From positions 50,797-114,796 of the forward strand of contig NW_005434574.1 in assembly GCF_000315625.1 (NCBI RefSeq): a stretch of 64,000 nucleotides of DNA, given 5' to 3'. This document shows, piece after piece, positions 7,545 to 35,342 of the stretch. The notes under the pieces were generated by a model that worked only from the letters and a program-made list of their open reading frames with translations, made no database searches and was not told the DNA's origin. Every line of letters starts with the position of its first letter. Positions within the stretch are counted from its first letter, which is position 1. This DNA is from Guillardia theta CCMP2712 (Eukaryota > Protista > Cryptophyta). The position numbers and the translations under genes are program-made.

Positions 7545-9176
7545 TCAGTGAGGGGATCTAGCTTTCCGCACTAGCCTCACAGAATTTAGTGCTGACCATT
7601 CAAGCTCAGTCTCTTCCTCAGTTCCTGGCCGATAACTCACTGTCCAAGCAGCAGGAGGGTGAAGTCTTACCTTGCTCCTGCTCCTCTTCCATGGCATCCG
7701 TCGCCTCTACCCACTCGCCAGTGGAAGGGTGACGAAACTTGGGAACGATCTTGGAGACCTAGGAAGGAAGTTGAGGCAGGGGAGAGGAAGGGAGAAGATG
7801 TAGGCACTGACCTCCGGCGCAAAGATGATTTGAAGCTTGACAAACTGCTTGTCTGAGCTCCAACCCTAACGAGTCGATGAGAGAGGAACGCAAGGGGAAA
7901 CGGAGGGGAGGAAAGAAAAGAAGGGAGGGGAGGGGATGAGGTTGTATGGTGACCTTCACTATTGCTTGCTTGTAGTCGGAAAGATTTGGTACCCATCCCT
8001 TCCACTCTCGTCAAGATGATGAAGAGAAGAGAAAATCTCAACCTGAAGCTCGACGATCTTGAAAAGAATCTCATCACCCACGGCTGGTCTTGTCTGAAGA
8101 AACCTGTGAGATGTGGTTGTTCAGTCGATCACTGGAGGTGTAGCAGGCAAGCAATACTTGTATTGCTCGTAGTTTTCTGAGATGTAGTGCGAGTTGCAGC
8201 CATTGCCTTTGCCTCTGTCTTTGTCTTTGTCTTTGTCTTTGTCGTTGTCTTGCTCTCTTGTATTGTTCGAAGGTTGTCTTGCCGATCGCGATTCGTTTGC
8301 TCTGTTGCTCTTCTCTTTATCCAAAGTGGCCAATGCTGCTTTCTGTTCCTTCTGCTGCTTCATGAAAGCATTTTTCTAGCCTCAAAGATTCAGTGGAGGA
8401 TGCGAAGAAAAGAGACGAATGATGAGAGGAAATCAGGAATAATGCAAGACGTTGAGAAATTGAAAAAAGTGTGGCTAAGGGCAGAGAACAAAAGAGGATC
8501 AGGAGAATTAAGTGATTAGACTTGAAGGGAGGAGGAGGAGGAGGAGGAGGAGGAGGAGGAGGAGGAGGAGGAGTAACGAAGGGGGAGGAGGAGGAGAAGG
8601 AAAGAACGACACGAGGAGGACAAGAGAAGAGAAAGAGGAGGAGGAGGAGGAGGAGGAGGAGGNNNNNNNNNNNNNNNNNNNNNNNNNNNNNNNNNNNNNN
8701 NNNNNNNNNNNNNNNNNNNNNNNNNNNNNNNNNNNNNNNNNNNNNNNNNNNNNNNNNNNNNNGAGAGGGAGGAGAGGGGAGGAGAGGAGAGGGGAGGAGA
8801 GGGGAGGAAGAGTGGGGAGGGGGAGGGGGAGGAAAGGAAGGTGGAGGGTGAGGGTTAGGGGAGGGTATGGCGGTATCGTCTTACCTTCCTCGTCGAAAAC
8901 AAGCCTCCTAGCTTTGTTCAGCGGTGTAACTTTCTTTTGAGTGGACCTGACCTCCTCCTCTTGCTTCTCCTTCTTCTCGTGCTCCTTCTGTCCTGTGCTT
9001 CCCTGCTGTTCCGGTCCATTCCCCTGCTGTGATTTCTTCTTGCCCCTCCTCCTCCTCCTCCTCTTCCTGCGGGTTGATGAACCCTGCTCTGACTCCCGAG
9101 CATTCTTCGCTTCCTTTCCGCTCATCCTTGATTTCGTCGGCGAACCTTTCTTCGTCGAAAGTGTCGCATGCTCCTT

Positions 9177-9397: not shown

Positions 9398-10075
9398 TTT
9401 CTTCATCCCCATCTACATCTTTCTCTCTCATCATTCCAGTTGAAATCTTCTTGTCACGAGTAGAAAGGCCGTTAAGCTTCTTGGCAGAGGAACGTGCTGT
9501 TGCTTCTTCGACTTCGTCATCGTCTTCGCTGCTTTCATCCTCCTCCACCTCCTCTACTTCCTTCTCCTCCTCCTCCTCCTCCTCCTCCTCCTCCTCTACT
9601 TCCTCCTCCTCCTCCTCGCGCTTGTTCTTCTTGTTCCTCCCTGCCTTATCTTCGATACAAGTAACAATAGAGCATCAGAAGTCAATCTTGCCTTACCTCT
9701 TCCCAGTTTGTTCGTTGACTTGTTCAACACACTCCGAGCCTCTCCGTCTCTCTCGTTCACTCCTACATGCGCCTTGTCATTCTCACACAACTTCAAACCG
9801 TCTCCTCACCTCTCCTCCACTTGCTCGCTGACATCTCATTCCTAGTCATCAACAGGCTCACCTCCTCCACCCCATCATCACCTATTCCCGCATACCTTGC
9901 GAACATGCAGCCAAATGCTGCTCCTGCTGCCGCCGCCCCTGCATGTCAAGTTGAGCAGGCGGTTGCGATCGGCCCTCCTTGCACTTCACCTGCTAAGAAG
10001 GCGCTGAAGAACTTGGGGTCCATCATGGCGGATGGCTCTTGCAGGAGAGATGACCCAACCCTGCGTCTCTTGCCT
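7545..10075 (-). CDS. COIL: Coilin (Cajal body scaffold); 5' end missing, probably in the gap at 10254-10353
   Basis: Acidic/Ser-rich linker, basic RRKRRRRRRGKKK and RRLVFDEEG. Spliced C-terminal Tudor-like domain NYEQY..RPAVGDEILFKIVELQ-GWVPNLSDYKQAIVK-GWSSDKQFVKLQII...ELEWSALNSVRLV matches the coilin pattern PxVGxxIxFKxxEL..P.xSDYK...W.xL.xxRL. Confidence 0.8.
8663..8762. other. Assembly gap (100 N)
   Basis: N run inside a purine-repeat intron. Confidence 1.
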
Positions 10076-10214: not shown

Positions 10215-10646
10215 TCCATCATCATCCATCATCATCATCATCATCATCATCTCNNNNNNNNNNNNNNNNNNNNNNNNNNNNNNNNNNNNNNNNNNNNNNN
10301 NNNNNNNNNNNNNNNNNNNNNNNNNNNNNNNNNNNNNNNNNNNNNNNNNNNNNGATGATGATGATGATGATGATGAGTGATGATGATGATGATGATGATG
10401 CTGATGATGATGCTGATGATGATGATGATGATGCTGATGCTGATGACGGAGTTGTTGATGATGATGATGACGATGACGACGACGATGGAGATGACGAAGA
10501 TGACAATGATGACGGAGATGATGATGATGATGATGTAGATGAGGAGGAAGATGATGACGATGATGATGATGATGACAACGACGACGATGGAGATGATGGA
10601 GATGATGATGATAATGATGGAGACGGAGGTGATGATGATGATGATG
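10083..10646. repeat. (CAT)n - gap - (GAT)n microsatellite tracts
   Basis: Oppositely oriented ATC-family repeats flank the N gap at 10254-10353. Confidence 0.95.
10254..10353. other. Assembly gap (100 N)
   Basis: N run. Confidence 1.
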
Positions 10647-20279: not shown

Positions 20280-21110
20280 TCATTTTTCATTCGGCCCTCT
20301 TTCCGAGGGGTGGGGTGCTTGTTGGTGGGGGTGGTACCTTTACCAGGGGTACTATCTCCATGAAGATTGTTTAAATTTCCGATGTTCAGACGAGTGGGGT
20401 TAGGATATGACCTCAGTCTAGAAGGGTAGGGTGGTGTGCGACTACTCTCACTCGACCGGTAGGGTCCGACGCCGGTACATTCTCGAATCGAGTTTCGGAA
20501 CGCGCCTCGGACTGTACCGGTACCGGCGGCCCGTCACGGCCACCGGGTAGCCGAACGGTCAGTAAAGTGACCGTGCTCAGGCTCACGGAGTCCACGGTAC
20601 GTTGGGCCCTTCAAGGCTTTCTGTACGGTCCCGGTTGCCACCGTCAGTGGCCCGGCCCGGCGGATCGGCAGGCTGGACGAACAAGGAAACGGCAGCGCTG
20701 GCACATCGGATGGTCTCTTCAATCTTCAGCCTCGACAAGTCACGCACACTGTGATCCGTGGCACTGTCACGGTGGACTACTACGGTTTGACTTCAACGCG
20801 GCGCAGCCGCTGAAACGCATCCGGTCCAGCCCGACTCGGCGAGTCGCGGGTCACCGTACTAGTAGTAGGTTCCGGTATGCGACCGTACAGTCGGCGTCAC
20901 TGCCGCCGGCGGCTGCTCAGTGACTGTTTCCCACTTTGAAGGGCCGGGCCTTCCGAGTCGGCGTGCCCGGCGCAGTGCGGCGGCGGCTACAGACTCGCCG
21001 CCGCGCGGCCGTGACACTCGGTGGCAGTAATGTGGCGAGGGCCGAGTCAGCCAACGTGGCATCATGACGGTAGTGGCCTGAGCGGGCCGCTCTTAGTTCA
21101 ATAAATAATA
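20280..21110. promoter_or_regulatory. Divergent intergenic region: GGGGT flank plus GC-rich core
   Basis: Lies between the channel 5' end and the giant gene. Repeated GTGAC/GTCAC and GACTCG/CGAGTC motifs. Confidence 0.5.
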
Positions 21111-21248: not shown

Positions 21249-21710
21249 ATGCGGTTAACGGCTATTCTTTGGCTCTTCATCACGTACTGTGGCCGTGTAG
21301 AATCATTGGGCTCCATTCAAAGCTGTTGCCAATGCCCTTCTTTCACGTACTTTTTCAACACCCAATTCGACTCCAGCTGTAGTGGTTGCAATAACAACTT
21401 GTATAACTGCTTCTGCAACCCCGGCACCTATTCGGACACGCTTTCTTCGTGTGCCGCCTGTCAGAATTGCGGGGTTGGGCAGTATGAAGCGTCGACCTGC
21501 AGCTCTTTTTATGACAGGTCTTGCGTGACTTGCTCGACTGCGGCGTGTGCTGCAGGCACCTACAAATCGCAATCGTGCGCTGACGGCAATCAGCCTTTTG
21601 ACAAGAAATGTACGGTTTGTTCATCCTGTTCACGGGGCCAATACATGGTCACTGATTGCCAGTATGGATCCGAAACTAACAACCGTGTCTGTGCACTCTG
21701 CACGATCTGA
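21249..21710 (+). CDS. Segment A of giant Cys-rich surface protein: signal peptide plus TNFR-like Cys repeats, cut off at the inversion breakpoint
   Basis: MRLTAILWLFITYCGRVES signal; repeats such as CQNCGVGQYEASTCSSFYDRSC. Stops mid-repeat at ...NNRVCALCTI* (TGA 21708-21710). Confidence 0.85.
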   Translation: MRLTAILWLFITYCGRVESLGSIQSCCQCPSFTYFFNTQFDSSCSGCNNNLYNCFCNPGTYSDTLSSCAACQNCGVGQYEASTCSSFYDRSCVTCSTAACAAGTYKSQSCADGNQPFDKKCTVCSSCSRGQYMVTDCQYGSETNNRVCALCTI

Positions 21711-24700
21711 TCGATACGCTGCCAGTAAACTGCGTCGTCATTGTCACTGGGCAATTAACGCAGGGTTCGAAGCTCCTGACTGACTTGTAAGTGCCAGCGG
21801 AGCAGTTGGTGCAGTTGTAGAAGTTGCTGCCGTATTGGCCCAGCGGGCAGAAGTCCAGCTCTGCCAGCCAGCCGTATCTGCAAGTGCAATTATCCGAAGA
21901 GATAGAGCCGGCAAGACTGTAGGAGTTGTGCGGGCAGGGATTGACGCTGGTGCCGTTCGGACAGTAGAAGTTTGGCGGGCAGAGGACGCAGGCGATTCCG
22001 ACTTGAAAGTAGCCCGGGAGGCAAAGGCACTGCGACAGAAGGATCGATCCGCGTGGAGAGCTGGAAAACTGCGGGCAGCGCAGAAAGAAGTCGCCACCGG
22101 GGCAGTAGGTCGCATTGGCACACTGGTTGCAGCCATCAGCGCCATTGCCGTAGTAGCCCGGATTGCAGGTGCAGTCGGTTGCTTCTATCGTACGATTCGT
22201 CGTCTTAGTGGAAGAGTGTGGAGTGCAAGGGATGCAAGGGGTTGAAGCAGCGTAATCGGGCTGGTAAGTATCCATGCTGCAAACTTCGCACGGCTTGCCC
22301 TGCGGCGAATCTGCAGTCTTGAACTTGCCAGGAACGCAGGCAACGCAGACGCCTAGTGACTGGTTGTAGTAGCCGGGATCGCAGGAGCAGGACGATATCT
22401 GCGTAGAACCGTTGGTGTTGCTATGCGAATGGTTAGGGCAGGGCAGGCAGGCGCCAATCACGGCTATGTCAGGATTGTACGTGCTGGCAGGGCAATTCTG
22501 GCACGACTTCAACGCAATATCGTAGTAGGTGCCGGAAGGACAGGGCAGGCAGTATCCAAGCACGTCGGAATAGCTGCGGTAGTAGCCAGGAACGCAGCTG
22601 CATTCGTAGCTCCCGGTAGCGCTCTTGGCGTAGGTAAAGCAGGGCTTGCAAGTGGTAGCCGCTACAGCGCCGATCTGTGCGGAAAACGTGTCGGAAGGAC
22701 AGGGCGTACAGGCGTTGTCGGATATTTGATCCTTGTAGTAGCCTTTAGAGCAGGGAATGCAGGTTTTGGATCCGCCGGCAATCAAAGGCTCGTAACCAAC
22801 CTGGCAAAGGCAGCTGGAAATCAGACTGGATCCGTTCGCCAGTGTTGTCGTTAGCGCCGGACATGGCAGGCAATCATCGATCGTGACGGAAGCTGTCTTT
22901 TCCATGTAGAATCCGACGGCGCAGGCAACGCAGGGCCCTTTCCCTTGGTAGTTCTTGTAGTATCCGGATTGGCAGGCCGCGCAGGCAACTCCGTCGCTGT
23001 TAGCAGTGTATCCTTCCTTGCATCTGCAGGCCAGAACGTTCACCGAAGAGCTCGGCGCTATCGAATTGGAAGGGCAGGGTAAACAGCTGGCAACGCTGGC
23101 AGATAGCGTGGTAATGGAGTAGGTGTCAGCAGGACAATCCTTGCAGGCTTCCGTCCCGTTTCCGTATCGTCCAAGTCCGCAGCTTACGCAATCAACGCCT
23201 ATCTTCTGGAAGCCGGAATCACACTTGCAGTCTTCCAACTTAAAAGCTCCGGGTATGGAAGTGGAATGCAGCGGGCAGCTGCTGCATTGAATGACGCTGG
23301 TAGCGCCTATCGCGGAACTGTAAGTGTTGGCAGGGCAGAGGGTGCAGTCAGACGAAGCGACGAAATTCTTGTACTTTCCGGCAGCGCACGGGACGCATCC
23401 GTTGGAACCATTGAAACTGGTGTAGCCGGCTACGCACAGGCAGTCTTCGATCCTGGAAGAGCCAGCAATGGAAGCGGTGAAAGTGGGACAGGGCTTGCAG
23501 GCCTTGTCTAACGCATAGGCTTCCGAATAGTAGTTTTCAGGACAGGGAGCGCAGGCGTAATCGCCAAGGTTGATTTTGTTCGTCCCAGGCTCGCAGGGGG
23601 CGCAGTAAACGTTGCTGTTTGGTGCTTGCGTGATCGTTGTTTCGCTGTGCCTGTAGCCGGGAAGGCAGAGACAGGAGCCGAAGCTGGAAGAGCCGCGACT
23701 AGATGTGGAATTGGAAGGACAGAGCTGGCATACAGTGGATTGCGTTACATCGGAATAAGTCCCTACAGCACAACTTTCGCAGACGCTGGAAGAAGAAGCG
23801 CCGACAACCTTCGAAAAAGTGCCAAGCGGGCAGGGAAGGCAGCGTGAAGAGCTGATAGCAGCAGTCTCCGATTGGTAGGTTCCGGCTGGGCAGAGCGTAC
23901 AGTTTCCACTGCCAGCACTGTTCTTGTAAGATCCAGCGGCACAAGGCAGGCAGTCAGCGCCGAAATAGCCCTGCTTGCAGATACACAGCGAAGCATCAGT
24001 GCTTCCATCCCCGATGGCGAACTTACCGGCACCGCAGACAGTGCATTCGCTGTTGCCAATCGCTGGCTTGAACGTTCCTGGTAAGCAGGGCTGGCAGCTG
24101 CCGTCGACCAGCAAGAAGTATCCCGCCAGACAGACGCATTCTGAAGCTGACTTGGAGCTGTAGATCGCTGTAGTCTTCGAAGCAGGGCACGAAGCGCAGA
24201 AGGTAAGACCAGCAGAAGGATTGTAAGAACCGAGCTGGCATTGACTGCATGAAACATAGCCCGTTCCTTCATATCCGACGCTGCAGAGACAGTCAGTCTT
24301 CGCTTCGCTACCTTGCATGAAAGTTATCGCGTTGGCAGCGCAAGGCGTGCAGTTTCCGTTGCCGACAAAATCTTTGTACTTGCCAATCGGGCAGGCAGAG
24401 CATCCGGAAGCTGCGCTCCAGCCGAATCCCTTGTCACACTGGCAGTCTGTCGAAGCGTTGCTTCCGCTGCTGGAAACAGAGCCGCTGGGGCAGGGAGAGC
24501 AAAACTTCAAGCTGTTAAGGTAAGAGTTCGGCGGACAGACAGAGCATGTAAGGTTCTGAATAAAGGGCAGTATTACAAAGTCACCAACATAGACGCTTCC
24601 GTATTCGGCCTGCAGCGCAACAAACCCCCTCCCTCCCATTACTTGCAGCAAAGCGTCAGTAAGCGACTTCTGATTGCCAAGAATCGCAATCCTCCCTCCA

Positions 24701-27700
24701 GCGCCGCCGCCGCCAGTCCTGATCGACTTATCCGCATTCCCGCCATTGCACTGTATCAGGCCCGTCACCGTCACGTACGGCGCTGAAAGCAGCACGCTTC
24801 CGCCGCTCCCTCCCCCTCCCAGCCTGATCGCATCGACAGAATTGTACAGGCTACTATCCCCGCCGTTGGCAAGCAGCGACCCGCCGATCAGGATGCTTTC
24901 GAAGGATGATATCGTCAAAGAACCACCGCCCGCGCCACCATCGTTGGAAGAAGGAGCAGGAAGATCGCAGGTCCCACCACCCCCGCCGCCGCTGCCAAGA
25001 ACGCTGCTGGCAGACCAATCACTGTAGATATCCAGCGCCCCGTAAGCAGACAGCGCAGGAAACGACCCGTCTCCTCCCCTCCCGCCATAGCTGCCACCAG
25101 CCCCGCCATACCAACAAGCTGTAGCGGCCGGCCCACCTCCCCTACCGGACCCTGCTTGAATCGGGGATGATAGATTCGCGCTGCCGCCCTTCCCGCCCCT
25201 GCCGCTGACGTCGATGGTGGCGTTGATGACTACGGCTTGGACGGAGTGAAGGACCAGCGGATAGCTGCCAGAAACCGCCACTATGACGTTCTTCCCCAGT
25301 AGCAAGGAGGAGAAGTAGATCTGGCAGCTTTCGTTCAGGATCTGGCCCGGCAGCACGTGTTCGGAATTGACGATGAAGGAAAGGCTGCAGACGTCAGTGT
25401 CGATGGTGACAATGCCGGAAGAAAGTTCCAGATAGTTGAAACCCAGATAGCCTACGTCGCAGGTGCAATTCGTCCTTCCGGTTGAAGAATAGCTGTTGGC
25501 AGGGCAGGCGATGCAATCGTTGCTGGCAAGGCTGTGGTAGGTGTTGGCAGGGCAGGGGAAGCAGGTGTAGCTGTTCAAGCGTCCGTAGCCCGGCGGACAG
25601 AAGCACTGGTTGATTGAAGTCGATCCGATGCTGGAAGTCATGCCTGCTGGACAGCGATCGCATATTCCGGACGCGTTCAGGTAGAAATTTGCGTTGCAGG
25701 AGCATTCGTAGCTCCCGTACGTGTTGGTGCAGACGGAGTTCAATCCGCAGCGCTGGCCGGAAAGGCATTCGTTGATGTCATAGCAGACAGAAGCGTTCCA
25801 GTCGAACTGGAAGCCGTTGCCGCAATAAATGCAGCTGTTGATCGTCTGGCTGAAGATCCCTTCCGTGCACTTACAGAACGTGCTGTTTGCATTCGAAACG
25901 CTGTTTCCAGGGCACTTCTTGCATATCGGCAGTCCAGTCTTTGCGTCAATCCCCGCCGTGTAGTAGTTGATCTGGCAGACGCAATCGTTGATGGTTTTTG
26001 CAGGGCCAACTGTTGTCATCGTTTGCGGACAGGCCTTCAACTCCGTCCTGCACTGCCGGCATTGGCCGTATACATCTTTGTAGTATCCAACAGGGCAAAG
26101 GCAGAGCTCCAGATCCGTCGCACCTTCAAAGGAATGCAGCCCGGCAGGGCAGAGCAAGGGAGAGGCACTGTAGCACGGCATGCAGTAGCCGTCAATGGGT
26201 AGAAGGTAGGAGCCTGTCCCGCACTGGCAGTCGGTGATATCTGTCGAGCCCATCGCACTGTAAGATCCGACGGGGCATTTCTGGCAGCTTCCAGAGCCCC
26301 TTTCGGACTTGTAAGTGTTGAAAGGGCAGGGAGCGCAGCCGTCCTGATAGGGATAGTAGCCCTTCCGGCAAAGGCAGGTCCTGTTAAGAAAGCTGGTATA
26401 GACGACTTCCATGTTATTCGGGCATTGGATGCAGGCGTCCAGCGTGCTGTTGGTAGTCAGAAGGTAGTCCGGGCAGGGCAGACAAGATCCGTTGGCCACG
26501 CCGTAGTAGCCAGAGCCGCAGGCGCAGTCGCTGAAAGAAGTGCTGCCGGAAAAGTAGGTGGAATACGGCACCGGGCAGGATTCGCAGCCGTAATTTCCGA
26601 CGGTGCTCTTGAACTTGCCAACAGGGCAATACTGGCAGATCTGGCTGAAGGCGATGCCGTCAATGGTTACAGGGATGGATACCGGCGTCATCTGATAGCC
26701 CTTTGCACAGGTGCAGTTCAGTATTGAAGTGCTGGCGATATCCATAGTCACCATGTTGAACGGACAGCGCGTGCAGTAGTCGGGACCGGCAGTGCTTTTG
26801 AAGTATCCATCATCGCAGGGGATACAGATGCCACCAGCCGCGCCGTAATAGCCGGCAGGGCAGTAGCAATTGACGACACTGGAAGAGCCGATGCCGGAAA
26901 CCATCCGATAAGGGCAGCTTTTGCACTTGAAGAGCCCGGCAACGTCACTGTATGTGCTTTCAGGGCATTGGACGATGTAGTAGCCGCCAACAGACAGCGT
27001 TGAAAGCAACCTTCTGCCACCGGGTGAAGCGGACTGATAGAAGCCAGGCGCAGCAACGCAGTCGGTGGATGAATTACTCCCCTCCTTACTGACAGTGTTT
27101 GGCGAACAGGAAAGGCAGGATAGCAGCCCGGCAACATCGCTGTAATGATCGGGCGGGCAGGGGTAGCAGGGGACGCTTCCGTTAAGCGAAAAGAAGCCCG
27201 GCCCGCAAAGGCAGCTACCAATCGAAACCGAACCCGTGCCGGAAGTGACGCCAGGGTACGGGCAGGCGGTGCAGTCCTGATTGCCGCTGCCATGATGGAT
27301 TTGAACTGGTTGAAGGGGCAAGCGCTGCAGGTGCGCGGTGCGCTAAGGTAGAATCCAGCCTTGCAGACGCAGGCATCGATGGAAACGCTCCCAATCGCGC
27401 TTACAGAGTTGGAAAAGCAAGAAACACAGGAGCCAGCAGACCAATACTTGTTTTCAGGGCATTGGATGCAATCCACCTTGCCTGCCGCCCCTGCGTTGTA
27501 GTAGCCGGCGACGCACTTGCAATCCGTTATGGCGACAGAAGCGGTCTGATTCGCGAAGGAATTGGCTGGGCACTGCGTGCATTGGAAGGAGCCGGTTATG
27601 TTCTTGTATTCGCCGGCAGGACAGGGCTCGCATTGGTTGCTTCCCGTCCCCCTGTAGCCAACAAGACAGAAGCAGGCGGATACATCAACAGACCCTTGCT

Positions 27701-30700
27701 TGATCGTCGAAGCATGGTCAGGGCATTGGGTGCAAAGCGCGTTCTTTGCCACGTCCTTGTACTTTCCAATCGCGCAGGCAGTGCAGGCAGTGCCAGAGCC
27801 GCCGTATCCCCTGTCGCAGAAGCAGGAATCGATGGCAACGCTGCGCTGGACGCTGGTCGACCCCGTTGGGCATGTTTTGCATATCGACCCGTCGTAGTAA
27901 GTGCCAGGTTTGCAGATAGAGCAGCTTCCATCGGTGTTGGACGAAAAGCCCTGCGCGCAGGCGCAATCGTAGATCGTTATAGAGCCTTCGATGCTGTCAG
28001 AATTCGCCGGACAGTCGTTGCAAGGCCCGGGCCCAAAGTCCTTGTACGTCCCCCTTGGACAGATGGTGCAGGCTTGGCCGTCAGAACCGTAATAGCCCGC
28101 GTTACAGAAGCACTGTTCCAAGCTGTAAGAGCCCGACGACGCAGTGTGCGTGTTGGCAGGGCAGAGCGTGCAGGGCTGGTAGATCGAAGGCTTGTAGTAT
28201 CCGACGGAGCAACCGACGCAGCTGGAACCGATCAGCTCTTTGCCTAGCGGACAGGAACAGGAAGTAGAAGCGTTCGCCGACGTAAGGCCAGAAGGGCAAG
28301 GCAGGCAGGAACTGCCACGCTGGTAAGTCCCTTCCTTGCAGGGGGTGCAGATGCCGTCGACTGGGATGTATCCTTCTATGCAGGTGCATTGAAGCGCGCT
28401 GGTAGAGCCGGCGGAACTTAACAGGCCCTTCGGACAAGAGAAAAGGAACGTCAGACCAACCATACAGCTCTGATTCCTGCTGTGCGTGGTGGTATTTTCA
28501 GGGCAGGAGCAGATGACGTACGTTTCATTGACGATGGTGGTGATGTAGGTCGAAGGACAGGGGCTTTGCTGGTAGACGCAGGTGCCGTTGACATCTAGAA
28601 AGCCATCCACACAAACGCATTCAAGCGACTGCGAAGAAGGTGAATACTGCAGCGTTCCGTTGCAAGAACCGCGGGTGTAAACGCAGGCAAGGTCGCAGGA
28701 ATAATATCTTCCAGTCCCGCTTCCAACGATCTTGCATCGATCCGTCGCCGAACTTCGGACGTATCCGGTGTAGACGACCGGCAGCCCTTCCGGATTCGAA
28801 GCGGGCGGCAGTTCGTAGGGCGTGTAGCTCTTGTTGCAGACGCAGTAGGAGCTGCCGACGGAAGACGTGCTGTTTCCAGGGCAGGAAAGGCAGGCATTAT
28901 CCGATGTGCTGTTCAAGGAGTACGTGCCCGCCGGACAGCGCGTGCAGGGGACATTTCCGTTTGGATTGCCGTAGTAGCCAGAAGGGCAGTAGCAGGAAAG
29001 GAAATAGCCCTGCTTTGGAGCGTAATAGATCACGATGTTGGTCTTGAAAGCATAGCCCTCTGTCACACAGAACAGTGTCTGACAGGAAGCAAGCGAAGGG
29101 CTAAGTGCAGGTGCAGATTTTCCACTGGGACAGACCTTGCAGAACGATATGTTTCCAGCCGTCAGATCGACGCCGGTGGAATAAGTGTCTGCTGGACAGG
29201 GATTGCAGACTGTCTGCCCATCACCCACGTAGCCGGCCATGCAGCGACATTTCCGTTCGAACGCGTAAGTTGAAATGTTCACTGGTGGGCTGTAGGGATC
29301 ATACTGCAATATCTGCGTGGTAGTGTAGTTGCCGTCAATCGGAACGCTGACATCCATGCTGCATTGCGGTATGTAGCAATCGATCAGCGAAGTCGAGCCA
29401 GGCTGCGAAACTTGGCCGAAAGGGCAGTCGTGGCAGAAATCGGGCGTTACTTCGTAGAAGGAAAGCACCAGAAGGCTTTCGCTTGCAAGGATGATCGAAC
29501 GCTTCTTGATGTCAGGGATGAACTTGCTGAAAGTTACGCCATTGACCCGTTTGAAGTCTTTTACCTGTTTACTCTTCGCGTCTACAAGCTGCAATCTGCC
29601 GTCAGTGGAAGCTATCAAGATCTGATCCTGCGTCGGACTGACTATCAGACCCAAGACATTGGAAAAGGTATAATATGCCGTGTTCTGGTAGAAGGGGCTA
29701 AGGAACGCTTCGCTCCCCACCGCCGCAACCGATCCTGGAATGTTGACAAGAAAAAGGGAGTTGGAAGACATCGCCCATACGGTTTCCGTCTTGTGCGCGT
29801 AAGCAATGCAGACAGGGGTGAAGGAGACAGTGAACGTTACAACTTTGAAATTGGAAAGATCCACCTTGCGGATTCCATTCAGGCCCGTCTCTAGAACTAC
29901 CATGTAGGCGCTGTCGTAGCTGACGTCGGCGGCAAAGGCGTTGCTGAATGAAGCCGCGGATCCAATCCCGTCCGTGCTGGTAGTGCTGCTGGAAGTGCCA
30001 ATGACGATCGTCTTGATGTAGGACTTTAGGCTTGTCATCGATACAAAAGAGCCCTTTTCGAACACGAATGCGTAGTTGCTGTCCTTGGTGATCTGGATCA
30101 GCTTCGGATTGGCGTAGGAAAGAACGTTGTTGTTGACGTCCCTGCTGACGGCCCAACCCACCTGCCGCTCTTTGTCAAGGATGTAGAGCACGGAAGAAGT
30201 TGAATCTTCCACCCTGAAGAAGTGGCTCTGGTTGAAGACGATGGACGAAGTATAACCCTGGATGACCACCAGCGGGGAATAGGTGATGGTCGTGTCCTGT
30301 CCGAACTTGCTGGTTCCGTATTGCTCCGGTCCGCAGCTGGGATTCAGCGTGCTGGAATTCAGGTAGTCGGAAAGATAGCTGATGCAGGACGCACTTCCGG
30401 GCTGGACGGAGTAGTAGCCGTTGGGACAGGGCTGGCAACCGATCGTGCTGGTAGAAAGCGTGTAATCAAGGTACTTTCCAACCGGACACAGATCACAGAA
30501 CGACTGGCCTGCCGTCAAAGACCAGGATCCAAGCGGACAGTACTGGCAGGGCGATTCGCCAAGAACGTTCTTGTATTTGCCAGCAGGACAGACGGAACAG
30601 GACGATCCAGAAGGTCCGGTGTAGCCAATGGGACAGACGCATTGGCTGCTGGATGTTGCGCCGGGCAGAGAAGTAGCGTTTTCCGGGCAGTAATTGCAGG

Positions 30701-30863
30701 CCTGGATGCCAATCGTGCTCTTGTAAGTGCCAGGGCTGCAGGGGCTACAATCCCTTCCGGAATAAAGCAGTTCAAATTCCGTCAGGCCCCACCACGCCCT
30801 GCTACTCCTGCCGAACGCCGTGTCCTTGCTGACGTTGATCTTCAGGTCCATCGTCAGAGAGAG
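21711..30863 (-). CDS. Segment B (inverted, ~3,050 codons, one frameshift near 27290): GCC2/GCC3 ephrin-receptor-like Cys repeats, NHL-like beta-propeller, Ca-binding EGF, Gly-rich domain
   Basis: ORFs 26748..30851 and 21676..27321 are one repeat protein in two frames. Dozens of CxxCPxGxYK...CxxCP...GSxSxxxCxC units. Propeller ~29450-30280 (DGIGSAASFSNAFAADVS...IRKVDL); DINECLSGQRCGLNSVCTNTYGSYECSC ~25680-25780; Gly-rich ~24600-25230; RRLL motif ~27010. No signal peptide or natural C-terminus of its own. Confidence 0.85.
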
Positions 30864-33800
30864 TCAGCAGCTGCGTCTGCGCGCCAGGATTGACCTTCAG
30901 CTTGACAGATCTATGCGTGCCTTGTCCGATAGCGACCTACAAGACCAACTTCAGTCTGTACGGCTGCCAGTCCTGCCCGCGCTTCTTCACTACGCCTTAC
31001 AACGCAAGCACCAGCTTTACAGAATGCACCTGCCTGCCTACCTTTGAAAGAACGGCACAGACAGTCTGCACCTGTCCGAAAGGAAGCGATTTACAAGCTG
31101 AAAGCTGCAAGCTCTGTCCTGTTGGTACGTACAAGAATACGTCATCGTTGGACTCTTGCTATCCCTGCCCGCGCTTCTTCAGCACTGCTTCCAATGGCAG
31201 CACCAGCTTCAACAACTGCAGCTGCGAAGCTACGTTCTACAGGGGAGCGGAGACTGTTTGCACTTGCGCGCTAGGCAAGACGCTTCACGGCGAAATCTGC
31301 GTCAGTTGCGACGTCGACACCTACAAAGACTTCATCGGATACGATGCCTGTATCAACTGCCCGCCGAATTCTATCACGCTCTCCAACCAATCTTCATCCT
31401 TTGATCAGTGTCTTGCTATCGCTGGCTATTACCGTGACGGAAGGAACTTTTCGCAGTGCCCAAAAGCCACCTACAAGCCCGTTGTCGGGAATATCAACTG
31501 TACAAACTGCCCGATTGGCTCTACCACCTTTTTCACTGGCTCTATCCCTGCGACAAGCTGCGTATCGGATCTTGGATACTACCAGAAAAGCGACGGAAGC
31601 TTCACCTTCTGTGCTATTGGTACTTATTCCGATGTAATCAACACGACGACCTGCAAGACCTGCTTCCCTGGCTCTACCACTGCCAGCACAACGGCTACGG
31701 CTTCCAGTCTCTGCATTGCCGACCTTGGCTACTACGGCAGCAGCGGCGTTTTCACGCAGTGTGCGATTGGCACTTACAGCGACCAGATCGGGCTTACTGT
31801 TTGCAAGTCATGCGCTGCTGGTCAGACTACCGGACAGATCGGCTCGAATAACTACCGTCAATGCGGCTTCCAGTGCGTCCCTGGCACTTACAGCTCTAAC
31901 GGTGTGATGACAAGCCTGGAAGACTGCGGTGCTATGACTGGCAATTCGCTCTGCACGGGCGGGCAGTCGAGCTATTACAGTTCTCGTGCTTTTCCTTGGA
32001 GCTACGCAGTGGATAACAATCTTGGCAACTTCATGCATACTGCTTGCGTCGCAACGCGCTATTGGTGGATAGATTTTGGCAGCAGCAAGGACGTTCAGTC
32101 AGTAGTGATGTGGAGTAGAAGCAATTGCTGTTGGGAGCGCGATAGTGGTGATAGGATCTATGTTGGCAACTCCCTGACGCCTACCAGCAACAAACTGTGC
32201 GGGATAATGGGACTTTTTCCAAGTGGAAATTACAACAACACTGTCAACTGCCAGTTCTCCGGCCGCTATCTGTTTGTTTACTATATCGGATACAATATAC
32301 GACCCGACTACTGCATGAACTGGGCGGAAATCAACATCCAGGGCTGTCAGAACTGTCCACTGGGCTATTTCCAAGCACAATCAGGCAGAACGAACTGTAG
32401 CGCCTGTGCGATCGGCTCTTACGCTGACGCGCCTGGATCTTCATCTTGCACGGCCTGTCCAACGTTTGCTACCAACGATATTCTGTCCAGCGTTACCATC
32501 GAAGATTGCTTCTGCACGAAGAACTTCGTTTGGTTGAACCATCAGTGCGTTTGTCCGAAAGGAATGCATCTTTCAAGTTATCAGAACTGCACGGATTGTC
32601 CTGCTGGCACGTACAAAGACAGCTTCAGTCTTTCCGAATGCCAAGTGTGCCCTGCCGATACCTATTCCAGTGCTGGCGCTTCGTTCTGTTCGTCATGCCC
32701 GGCGCAGACGCGAAGCTCTAACTCTTCCAGTTCCATCTGCGACTGTGTTTCCGGCTGCGGATTCGGTTCTTACTGGAACAGTTCGCTTGGGCAGTGCGTT
32801 TTCTGCGAAGCTGGCAAGCTAAGCCCTGCGTATGGCTTGGCAAACAACGGGCAATGCGACAACGCCAGCAGCTGCGCGGCCAACACTTACGCTTCTAACG
32901 GGGTATGTATACCCTGCCCTGATTCCAGGCCTTATTCGCCTGCTGGCTCTACCAACGAATGCTTCTGCACGGCTGACCAATGCCTGCTAACAGCCTGCAA
33001 CTTCGACGAATATGCAGAGCCCGGCTACTGTGTCTCTTGTCCTGACTCGAAGCATGTGCCCTGGCCCAGATATGCAAGCTTCGGACCTGACCAACTGCCA
33101 ATGCAAGAACATATCGAAAACCTGTCCGTTTGATTCATACATGATTGAAGAGATTAATATGACTTCCAGCATTCCATTCACCAAGCTCAGTGATAACGAA
33201 AACATCTACTGGAAATTTACCAACAAAGGCGACGATCAGACAGCCTACAGTGTCAACGTGACAGTGCCAACGCTGGTCACAATGCTGATCATTGCAGGCG
33301 GCGGTTCTGGCGGTGACGCAGTGGGAAAGTACGTAGCTAGATCGCAAAGTGTCGGCGGTGGTGGAGCCGGTGGTGCGATACGCGCTACTGACGTCTGGCT
33401 GCCTGTTGGTCAGTATACCGTGAAGGTTGGCAGGGGAGGAGTGAATGGAAATGGCATAGATAGCTCTTTAATCAGCGCCAATGCTAGCTACATAGCTATT
33501 GGTGGCGGAATGGGCGGATGGTACGGTGTGAATGGCCAATTCGGTGGCTCTGGTGGCGGTGCCGGTGGAAGTTCAAGTGGTGGCGGAGGTGTTTCTGGAC
33601 AAGGCTATCGTGGCACTCCCAGTAGCGGATTCGGCACAAGCGGAGGAGGTGGCGGCGCCGGTGGTTCTGGGCCTGCAGCGTATTCTAGTGCATACAATTC
33701 CAAACTTCCAGGCCCTTGTATCTATTCAGACATTACTGGAACTTTGCTGCCTTACGCGGCCGGAGGTAACGGTGGATCAGATGGCGATTTGGTCATATCT

Positions 33801-35342
33801 TGGAAGAATACAGTCAGCATGTGCGGCATCGGTGGCGTTGGTGGTTGGTCCGGTCACATAACTGGAACGAACGGAGCTCCGGATACTGGATCTGGCGGTG
33901 GTGGCGGTGGATTGTCAGGAGCAGTTGTCGCAGCGCCGAACATTAACGATCCGGGCGATACGCCTGAAGCATCAGGTAACGGAGGATCTGGCATTGTTAT
34001 CATTCGTTCGGTATACTTCCGGTATTGTCAAACTTGTCCTGCTTCAAAGCCTAACGCTCCAGTCGGATCTACTGACCCATGCCACTGCCAGCGCTGTCCG
34101 CTTGATTCATTCGACGTTGGTGATACCTGCGTGAAGCGCTGCCCGGCCAATTCGAAGAAGCTGCCTACCGAATCTTACTTCAACTTTTCATGCGCCGCTT
34201 ATCCTGGATTCTACCGCAATGGAAGCGACTTCCAGCGCTGTCCGATTGCAACCTACAAAGATACATATGCCAACACGCCCTGCCTTGCCTGCCCGCTTGG
34301 CACGTATTCCAACATCGAACAGAGCACTTTCTGTAGGGATTGTCCAGTTGGTTACTACACAGTTTCAACGGGCTCTTCGGTGTGTGTTTCCTGTCCCACC
34401 TATTTCACTACAGTCGGCAACGGAAGCAAGAGCTACGACTACTGCGTTTGTCAACCTGGCTTTTCCCGTAAGGATTATGCAAGTTGCGCCTGTAGTCCGG
34501 GCTATACATTCGATGGCAATTCAAGCTGCAAAACTTGTGCTGTCGGATACTACAAAGATCACATTGGTTTTGATAACTGTACTGCCTGCGGTCAATACTT
34601 CAATACTGCGGGACAGGGCAGTCCCAGCTTTGATAACTGCACCTGCATTTCGAACTTCGTGAAAGAAGGAGATCAATGTCTTTGTGATATTAGATTCTAT
34701 CACCAGAGCGGTGCTACATTTTGTACGGTCTGCGCAGGTGGAAGCTACAAGAATGTCAAAAGCTTAGCAAACTGCTCTATTTGCGGAGCTGGAAAGTATT
34801 CCGACAGTGGAGCTTCAGTCTGTATCAATTGCCCTATCAACACGTTGAACGGCGGGAATGGATCGGGTCTATGCAGCTGCGCTTCAGGTTGTGGATATGG
34901 CTCTTACTGGGATATATCTTCCAGTCAGTGTGTCATTTGCCCTGTTGGAAAGGTCAGCCCTGCTTACGGAATAGCTAACAGCGGTACGTGCGATACCAGC
35001 AGCGTCTGTGCCGCAAATACATACTTGTCTGCAGGAATCTGTATCGCCTGCCCTTCTGATAAACCGTATTCGCCTGCTGGCTCTACGAACAAATGCTTCT
35101 GTACTGAAAATCAGTGTATCGAAACGTTTTGCAACGCCTACCAATACTATAATGGAACTTCTAGCCAGTGCCTGATGTGCGCACAGGGATTCATGCCGTT
35201 CACTTTTAGCCCTTTCGTTAATTTCCACTCTTCTTTTCGAGAAAGTTTTTTTGGGGTGGCGTGTGAATTCAAACAAGTTTTCAACGGCAGCAAGAGATAC
35301 CTCCAAAGAGTACCAGTGCAGTTTAGTTATCATTTCTGCTAG
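30864..35342 (+). CDS. Segment C (~1,490 codons, one frameshift near 33062): Cys repeats, F-type lectin domain, Gly-rich domain; 3' end apparently truncated
   Basis: Frame opens mid-repeat (SSCVCAPGL) with no ATG or signal peptide. F-type lectin ~31950-32345 (AVDNN..FMHT..WWIDFG..RSNCCWER..IYVGN..GRYLFV..WAEI). Gly-rich ~33250-34010 (IIAGGGSGG..GGGGAGG..YTVKVGRGG..GGSGIVIIR). Cys pattern ends near 35195 without a TM anchor. Confidence 0.85.

Follow-up and report, generated by a model that had tools for sequence, protein, structure and literature searches.

Short inverted copies of flanking DNA are the known footprints of several hairpin-forming systems: hAT, Transib, RAG1 and a MULE generate hairpins on the flanking donor DNA, which are then opened by the host and end-joined (PMC5499845). 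Here, the lesions of a giant gene of Guillardia theta CCMP2712 are compared with such footprints. The gene lies in a 64,000-nucleotide stretch of DNA, referred to below as the window, which is part of contig C100 in a genome assembly of 87.1 Mb and 669 contigs. According to the list of open reading frames, five long open frames at 21249-35342 jointly form one cysteine-rich gene of 14.1 kb, interrupted by an inversion and two frameshifts. The original prediction placed the left inversion breakpoint and both frameshifts on short palindromes and regarded all of them as traces of the same process. Our analysis indicates that the gene probably carries three unrelated lesions, namely an inversion between 4-bp repeats, a 5-nt variant of a hairpin-type scar and a 7-nt near-duplication, the other two palindromes being pre-existing. 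Frameshift 1 is a strain-specific insertion, probably a genuine scar of the hairpin type, and the recent inactivation of the gene in the sequenced strain involved three independent events, namely the inversion and two small insertions.

The reality of these lesions was assessed with contigs of four public runs, compared with window positions 27150-33140, the left inversion junction being outside that stretch. X1 (2021) and X2 (2011) are runs from two separate studies of the organism, and X6 is labelled as a freshwater metagenome. The contigs of X1 and X2, spanning 27150-29506, 29714-31236 and 31933-33140, show 0 differences from the window at frameshift 1, at the right inversion junction and at frameshift 2. 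Since both runs agree with the window, these three features are not assembly errors. The claim that the insertions are real and not homopolymer-type sequencing slips is thereby borne out, as both are carried by the X1 and X2 contigs and none of the lesions is a homopolymer. An explanation of the lesions as sequencing or assembly artefacts, such as a mis-oriented contig or indel errors, could draw on the draft character of the assembly with its 669 contigs, on two runs of exactly 100 N in the window (8663-8762 and 10254-10353), which are assembly gaps, and on the fact that X1 may itself be the source of the assembly. Given, however, that two runs of different studies and years match the window at all three sites, that the lesions are not of the homopolymer type and that the junctions are clean, with no N close by, we find such an explanation hardly credible.

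The metagenome X6 contains a relative with 95-100% identity. One of its contigs lacks five letters at 27288, i.e. 27289-27293. A second one corresponds to the window from 30864 on; ahead of 30864, it continues with the window sequence that starts at 21711, in reverse complement. The missing 5 nt and the join of 21711 to 30864 together show that the gene of the wild relative is un-inverted and devoid of frameshift 1. A 14-kb gene frameshifted by a hairpin-type scar is thus available as a polarised natural example, its allele without scar and inversion still being present in the wild. Scans of metagenome contigs gave 0 matches for the un-inverted downstream junction (junction B) and 0 matches for a frameshift 2 allele without insertion. 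Within the same genome, two paralogs could be compared. The first, on contig C17 (G000:C17:947749-962456; loci L014, L015, L017 and L018), is un-inverted and colinear with the gene. It is heavily decayed: many deletions of 7-22 nt relative to the window, mostly not multiples of three, have broken its frames. The second, on contig C26 (G000:C26:557814-559424; loci L003 and L019), has homologues of 31047-31448 fused straight to those of 33038-34401. It is without about 1.6 kb present in the window, and its junction is located about 25 nt before the palindrome at 33061-33069.

Frameshift 1 results from the insertion of five letters, CATGG on the coding (minus) strand, at 27290-27294 (or 27289-27293, or 27288-27292), which are present in X1 and X2 and absent from X6. 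Read in the coding direction, the wild allele is ..TCC ATC AGC GGC.. and the sequenced strain has ..TCCAT CATGG CAGC... The insert, placed right after CAT, has the form C-ATG-G, that is, a C, the reverse complement of the three preceding bases and a G. Its letters ATGG are the reverse complement of CCAT, from which they are set apart by the single base C, and the 4+1+4 palindrome CCAT-G-ATGG at 27290-27298 was created by this 5-nt insert. Deletion of 27289-27293 had been predicted to give F-K-S-I-S-G-N-Q-D-C. Indeed, the X6 allele lacks exactly these letters and its frame is restored; the search for alleles without the insertion, proposed at the same time, was thus successful for frameshift 1. 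When 26900-27700 was searched against the genome at the DNA level, the window itself was the only match and, in the absence of a paralog at this site, polarity was taken from the reads. As for a nearby template of the 5-nt insert, no junction-spanning 8- to 12-mer was found within hundreds of bases. An 11-mer at 10019 was considered as a template and discarded, being 17 kb off and compatible with chance.

The insert closely resembles a scar motif of 11 letters, X-C-rc(X)-G-X, in which X is a triplet and rc(X) its reverse complement. This motif is found nine times in the window, compared to 1.15 +/- 1.0 (maximum 4) in 100 dinucleotide-preserving shuffles, and versions with other bracket letters are found 0-5 times. 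The nine scars are located at 20609, 20653, 20832, 37823, 37941, 45890, 46698, 46789 and 46799, with X being CTT, CGG, CGA, GCT, GTC, TCT, TGA, CTC and CCT, respectively. All of them are outside the giant gene and its long open frames; the three clean scars at 20609, 20653 and 20832 (20609-20842) lie 400-640 nt upstream of its start codon. They form clusters, with three scars in 230 nt, two in 120 nt and another three in 110 nt, which suggests hot spots or local hopping. A similar excess is observed in 144 kb of other loci of the same genome, where the motif was counted 45 times versus about 2 expected (0-17 for other brackets), this count being biased upward because the set comes partly from a region flagged for scars. 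One of these 45 scars is a clean form of the frameshift 1 sequence. Furthermore, among young paralogs elsewhere on the contig, 6 of 13 short insertions are inverted copies of their flanks, compared to 2.04 expected (P about 0.01).

The other loci (e.g. L029 and L031-L040) also contain X-C-rc(X)-C-X 17 times and X-G-rc(X)-G-X 15 times, both well above chance. Since these two motifs are mutually reverse-complementary, a second scar variant seems to exist. A sequence of about 1 kb is present in L029 (G000:C100:193000-202900) and in L030-L041, in at least 14 copies of 71-98% identity, three of them within 10 kb. Its internal indels are multiples of three, so that it looks coding, and the non-coding DNA around it is rich in the 11-letter scar. 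For the scar-rich stretches of the window, 20.35-21.11 kb and 46.3-47.2 kb, no unscarred paralogs were found in the genome.

It is fairly likely, in our estimation, that frameshift 1 is a variant of the X-C-rc(X)-G-X scar, in which the first eight letters are matched and the inserted letters constitute the C-rc(X)-G core. Several observations weigh against this assignment. The second X is absent, since the ancestral CAG stands where CAT would be expected, and the gene gained 5 nt net where a clean scar would add 8. A direct copy of GGCA, two bases downstream, would account for the insert as well. In addition, an inverted match to four letters of the flank within 15 nt is obtained with about 15% of random 5-mers, and the half motif X-C-rc(X)-G is modestly enriched, with 95 and 97 occurrences on the two strands versus about 71 +/- 9. 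Such observations leave room for the view that all three palindromes are coincidental and that frameshift 1 stems from ordinary end joining, untemplated or direct-templated, or from a replication error. The arms are short and were picked post hoc; a random 5-mer at this site gives a palindrome with arms of at least 4 and a spacer of 0-3 in 17% of cases (a 4+1+4 palindrome in 3%), 30% of such 5-mers reproduce four letters of the flank, whether direct or inverted, and the missing second X fits this view as well. Taken by themselves, the frequencies for random 5-mers would make a weak case for a scar. On the other hand, the inserted letters are exactly C-rc(X)-G, for which we estimate, by reasoning rather than by a computed test, a frequency of about 0.2-0.3% among random 5-mers. 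Moreover, the definition of the motif comes from other DNA, its enrichment in this genome is 8- to 20-fold, and flank-inverted insertions are enriched among recent insertions elsewhere. Coincidence is thus an unlikely explanation, one that nevertheless deserves to be kept in mind, and we retain the scar assignment for frameshift 1. As the lesion shares its core with a motif over-represented 8- to 20-fold in the genome, the scar process, with whatever transposon underlies it, becomes testable as a source of gene loss.

The situation is different for the palindrome at 33061-33069. This CTGG-C-CCAG (TGGCCCAG at this place) belongs to a conserved coding segment, P-W-P-R, and is not a lesion: the C17 and C26 paralogs carry TGG(C/T)CCAG at the same position and in frame (..L-P-W-(P/S)-R-Y-A-S-F-G-A-D-Q-C-K..). 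The true frameshift 2 consists of seven extra letters on the plus strand at 33091-33101 (CCAACTG through CTGCCAA, the placement being ambiguous over CCAA), 22-30 nt downstream of the conserved TGG(C/T)CCAG. They are present in X1 and X2 and absent from C17 and C26, and their removal joins ..F-G-P-D to Q-C-K-N-I-S-K-T-C-P.. as in both paralogs. The prediction was therefore right about the letters of the palindrome and about the shifted frame; the palindrome, however, is ancestral and the lesion is elsewhere. Deletion of 33061-33064, put forward as a repair, opens the frame arithmetically, but the resulting frame is not that of the paralogs. The insert CTGCCAA follows CTGACCAA, 7 of 8 letters being matched in direct orientation with 4 nt of placement ambiguity, and it has no inverted relation to its flanks. 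Judged by these letters, frameshift 2 can be described as a 7-nt imperfect tandem duplication, which would have arisen by slippage or by direct-templated end joining. What weighs against this description is that absence of the seven letters is documented in the C17 and C26 paralogs only, the X6 contigs not extending over the site. A scar class of the form Y4-C-T-G-Y4, considered for frameshift 2, was rejected, since its 14 occurrences versus 8.3 +/- 3.2 are not a significant enrichment.

The inversion likewise differs from a hairpin-type scar. A segment of 9.15 kb was flipped between the two copies of a 4-bp inverted repeat, CTGA at 21707-21710, where the C17 homology ends, and TCAG at 30864-30867, at the right inversion junction. 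The C17 paralog matches the reverse complement of 21707-21956 and then 30864-31300, with the four letters TCAG as an overlap; the X1 and X2 contigs bridge the right junction unchanged over 29714-31236. When rebuilt, the downstream junction is in frame and encodes G-S-V-S-I-S-S-C-V-C-A-P-G, in agreement with the repeat motif, and the same junction is found in X6. On this checkable side (B side; X6 and C17), no base was gained or lost. As the comparison with un-inverted sequence covers the B side, the 4-bp repeat may be a pre-existing microhomology or, alternatively, a duplication produced by 4-bp staggered cuts at the left junction (A), a point that weighs against our account of the inversion.

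The 5+1+5 palindrome CGATC-T-GATCG at 21703-21713 spans the left inversion junction. Its right arm, GATCG, is ancestral coding sequence of the inverted block (..S-I-S..), present in the un-inverted X6 and C17, and its left arm, CGATC, runs on from the first open frame. The palindrome would have arisen because both ancestral left flanks end in CGATC and were joined by the inversion. Its central letter is T, not the C or G of the scar. The abutting 5+3+5 palindrome, GTGCA-CTC-TGCAC at 21691-21703, is contained entirely in left-flank coding sequence (V-C-A-L-C) and is not part of the junction. Concerning the left breakpoint, the letters of both palindromes (21703-21713 and 21691-21703) were thus correctly identified, whereas the scar reading is not supported, given the ancestral right arm in X6 and C17 and the lack of added bases there. 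A rebuilding of the gene by hand without CGATC, as would be appropriate if these letters were added P nucleotides, runs out of frame into a stop and lends no support to that idea. A strict un-inverted reconstruction at the 4-mer, also made by hand, retains the TGA that closes the first frame; 12 nt beyond it, the next frame starts in phase. The idea that both breakpoints are seamless coding joints was rejected on account of this persisting TGA. A candidate intron of about 85 nt could join the first two frames in phase. Its signals would be GTATGG at about 21662, a CT-rich run containing a branch-like CTGAC and, about 35 nt further, CAG as the acceptor. Accordingly, the breakpoint of the inversion on the upstream side may be placed inside a putative intron.

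How readily palindromes of this kind occur by chance can be judged from their density. The 14.1-kb gene contains 47 palindromes of the 4+1+4 type, i.e. 3.3 per kb versus 3.9 per kb expected in random sequence, and palindromes with arms of 5 nt separated by 0-3 nt likewise number 47. For an interval of 122 nt, the length of the frame overlap that delimits the possible sites of frameshift 2, overlap with a 4+1+4 palindrome has a probability of 0.36. The palindromes at 21703-21713 and 33061-33069 fit this chance density; both are pre-existing sequence, the former on the side that could be compared, and only frameshift 1 created its palindrome. Removal of one palindrome arm does restore the frame at each frameshift, as had been noted, but the argument is arithmetical, any deletion of 3n+1 letters within the frame overlap having the same effect. 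For sequences read by eye, this calls for caution: palindromes with 4-nt arms are met about every 300 nt, and any 3n+1 deletion mends a +1 frameshift. The family was examined through 21 indels of at least 4 nt (20 distinct) between the gene and its C17 and C26 paralogs, mostly 7-22-nt deletions in C17. A palindrome extends across the boundary at 2 of the 21, compared to 2.19 expected (P=0.66). In contrast, direct microhomology or duplication is enriched at these indels, with a mean of 1.71 versus 0.72 (P<0.0005). The enrichment of palindromes proposed for the gene family was thus not observed, and the family-wide claim fails.

Three lesions with three different signatures, together with the lack of a palindrome excess at family indels, do not support a single targeted mechanism. 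The most far-reaching part of the original prediction, that one break-and-join mechanism, possibly targeted, has hit the gene repeatedly, is consequently abandoned: the signatures differ and palindromes at the family indels do not depart from chance. In its general form, this explanation would have one hairpin-forming activity (RAG, hAT or Transib-like, or polymerase-theta snap-back) make all three lesions, perhaps as a system of targeted diversification or silencing. It gains something from frameshift 1, which fits it, from the presence of a hairpin-type scar process in the genome, with three clean scars just upstream of the gene, and from the striking fact that a single gene of a single strain has been disabled three times over. 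It is nevertheless very improbable. At frameshift 2, the palindrome is ancestral, and the seven extra letters bear no inverted relation to their flanks; at the left junction the right arm is ancestral, the centre is T instead of C or G, and no bases were added on the testable side. Palindromes are at chance level among the 21 family indels, direct microhomology being enriched instead, and once the inversion had killed the gene, further frameshifts were expected to build up neutrally. With only one of the three palindromes made by a lesion, there is no longer a case for a nuclease, or a system of diversification, directed at a gene for a surface protein. In a related proposal, the transposon behind the genome-wide scars, a hairpin-forming cut-and-paste element, would also have visited this gene. 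Its excision scars would be a major ongoing source of gene-killing frameshifts, and the inversion an aberrant joining of ends made by its enzyme; we consider this quite doubtful, and maintain that the three lesions are unrelated.

The gene itself has a repetitive architecture. Over its length, Pfam recognises about 39 Ephrin_rec_like repeats, ELAPOR1-type TNFR repeats, EGF, a galactose-binding-like domain and a glycine-rich domain. The first open frame (21249-21710, plus strand) has a signal-peptide-like start and TNFR-type cysteine repeats (TNFR_c6, E=2.5e-8), and its stop is the TGA within the left-junction 4-mer. The inverted block of 9.15 kb (21711-30863, coding on the minus strand) has about 27 Ephrin_rec_like repeats in two frames divided by frameshift 1, one from 30851 down to about 27290 and the other from 27321 down to 21676. 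The downstream part (30868-35342, plus strand) is divided by frameshift 2 into frames 30890-33133 and 33012-35342, with Ephrin_rec_like repeats, the galactose-binding-like domain and the glycine-rich domain. From these features, the predicted product is a secreted or surface protein of Ephrin-receptor-like cysteine repeats, roughly 4,900 codons long. The listed codon changes between X6 and the window comprise 9 synonymous and 6 non-synonymous ones, which suggests that the gene was under selection until recently. RNA reads over the gene (run X11) are almost nil. The start of the inverted block (30750-30851, minus strand) encodes ..A-W-W-G-L-T-E-F-E-L-L-Y-S-G.., similar to the final strands of the galactose-binding-like domain (..M-N-W-A-E-I-N-I-Q-G..). 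The remainder of that domain is not upstream of this match, which may point to an earlier rearrangement or to an exon that is missing.

We infer both the agent behind the scar and the order of the three lesions. The scar is best explained by a hairpin intermediate at a broken end. Its probable source is a cut-and-paste transposon that has C...G ends, duplicates 3 bp of its target and leaves the scar on excision. Such an excision would leave a hairpin on the flank, capped by one base of the element. Once the hairpin had been opened and the ends joined, one side would read X-C-rc(X) and the other G-X. In the case of frameshift 1, the right end would have lost the G and the duplicated triplet before joining. 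Searches of the genome with the Pfam profiles PF05699 (hAT) and PF12940 (RAG1) gave 0 matches, but the controls were equally silent, which makes this result uninformative. Within the window, the pair 53859/58520 (ends CATCCCTTCG, flanking GAG, 4,662 nt) was examined as a possible transposon and attributed to chance, since its left end has no further copy in the genome and both ends are crossed by open frames. Snap-back synthesis by an end-joining polymerase is an alternative for frameshift 1. Family A DNA polymerase domains are encoded at five loci of the genome (C61:212771-213757, C7:127978-129342, C91:218552-219969, C21:619102-621322 and C120:9645-11541), three of them split into several exons.

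Compared with known systems, the three lesions find different counterparts. The inversion resembles balanced two-break inversions formed at microhomology or with small staggered-break duplications: both breakpoints are clean and bear the same inverted 4-mer, and no letters are missing on the B side, where the un-inverted allele allows a comparison. A difference is that neither breakpoint carries a repeat or mobile element. Templated insertions by polymerase theta are similar in that short inserts are copied from within a few bases of the break; frameshift 1 could be such a copy in inverted orientation and frameshift 2 in direct orientation, and the inversion junctions have 4 bp of possible microhomology. 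However, snap-back synthesis by this polymerase predicts neither the constant C...G bracket nor the flanking 3-nt duplication of the genome-wide scar. The footprints of hairpin-forming transposons and P nucleotides are akin to frameshift 1, where the added letters are an inverted copy of the flank that is absent from the wild allele, whereas the palindromes at the left breakpoint and at 33061-33069 are not footprints. The X-C-rc(X)-G-X scar, for its part, resembles a 3-bp target duplication around a resolved hairpin, from which frameshift 1 differs by the lack of the duplicated target triplet. Classical P nucleotides adjoin the end without a centre base. Here, in contrast, a constant C (a G on the opposite strand) occupies the centre, and the resulting odd length would fit offset nicking of the hAT-like rather than the classical RAG type.

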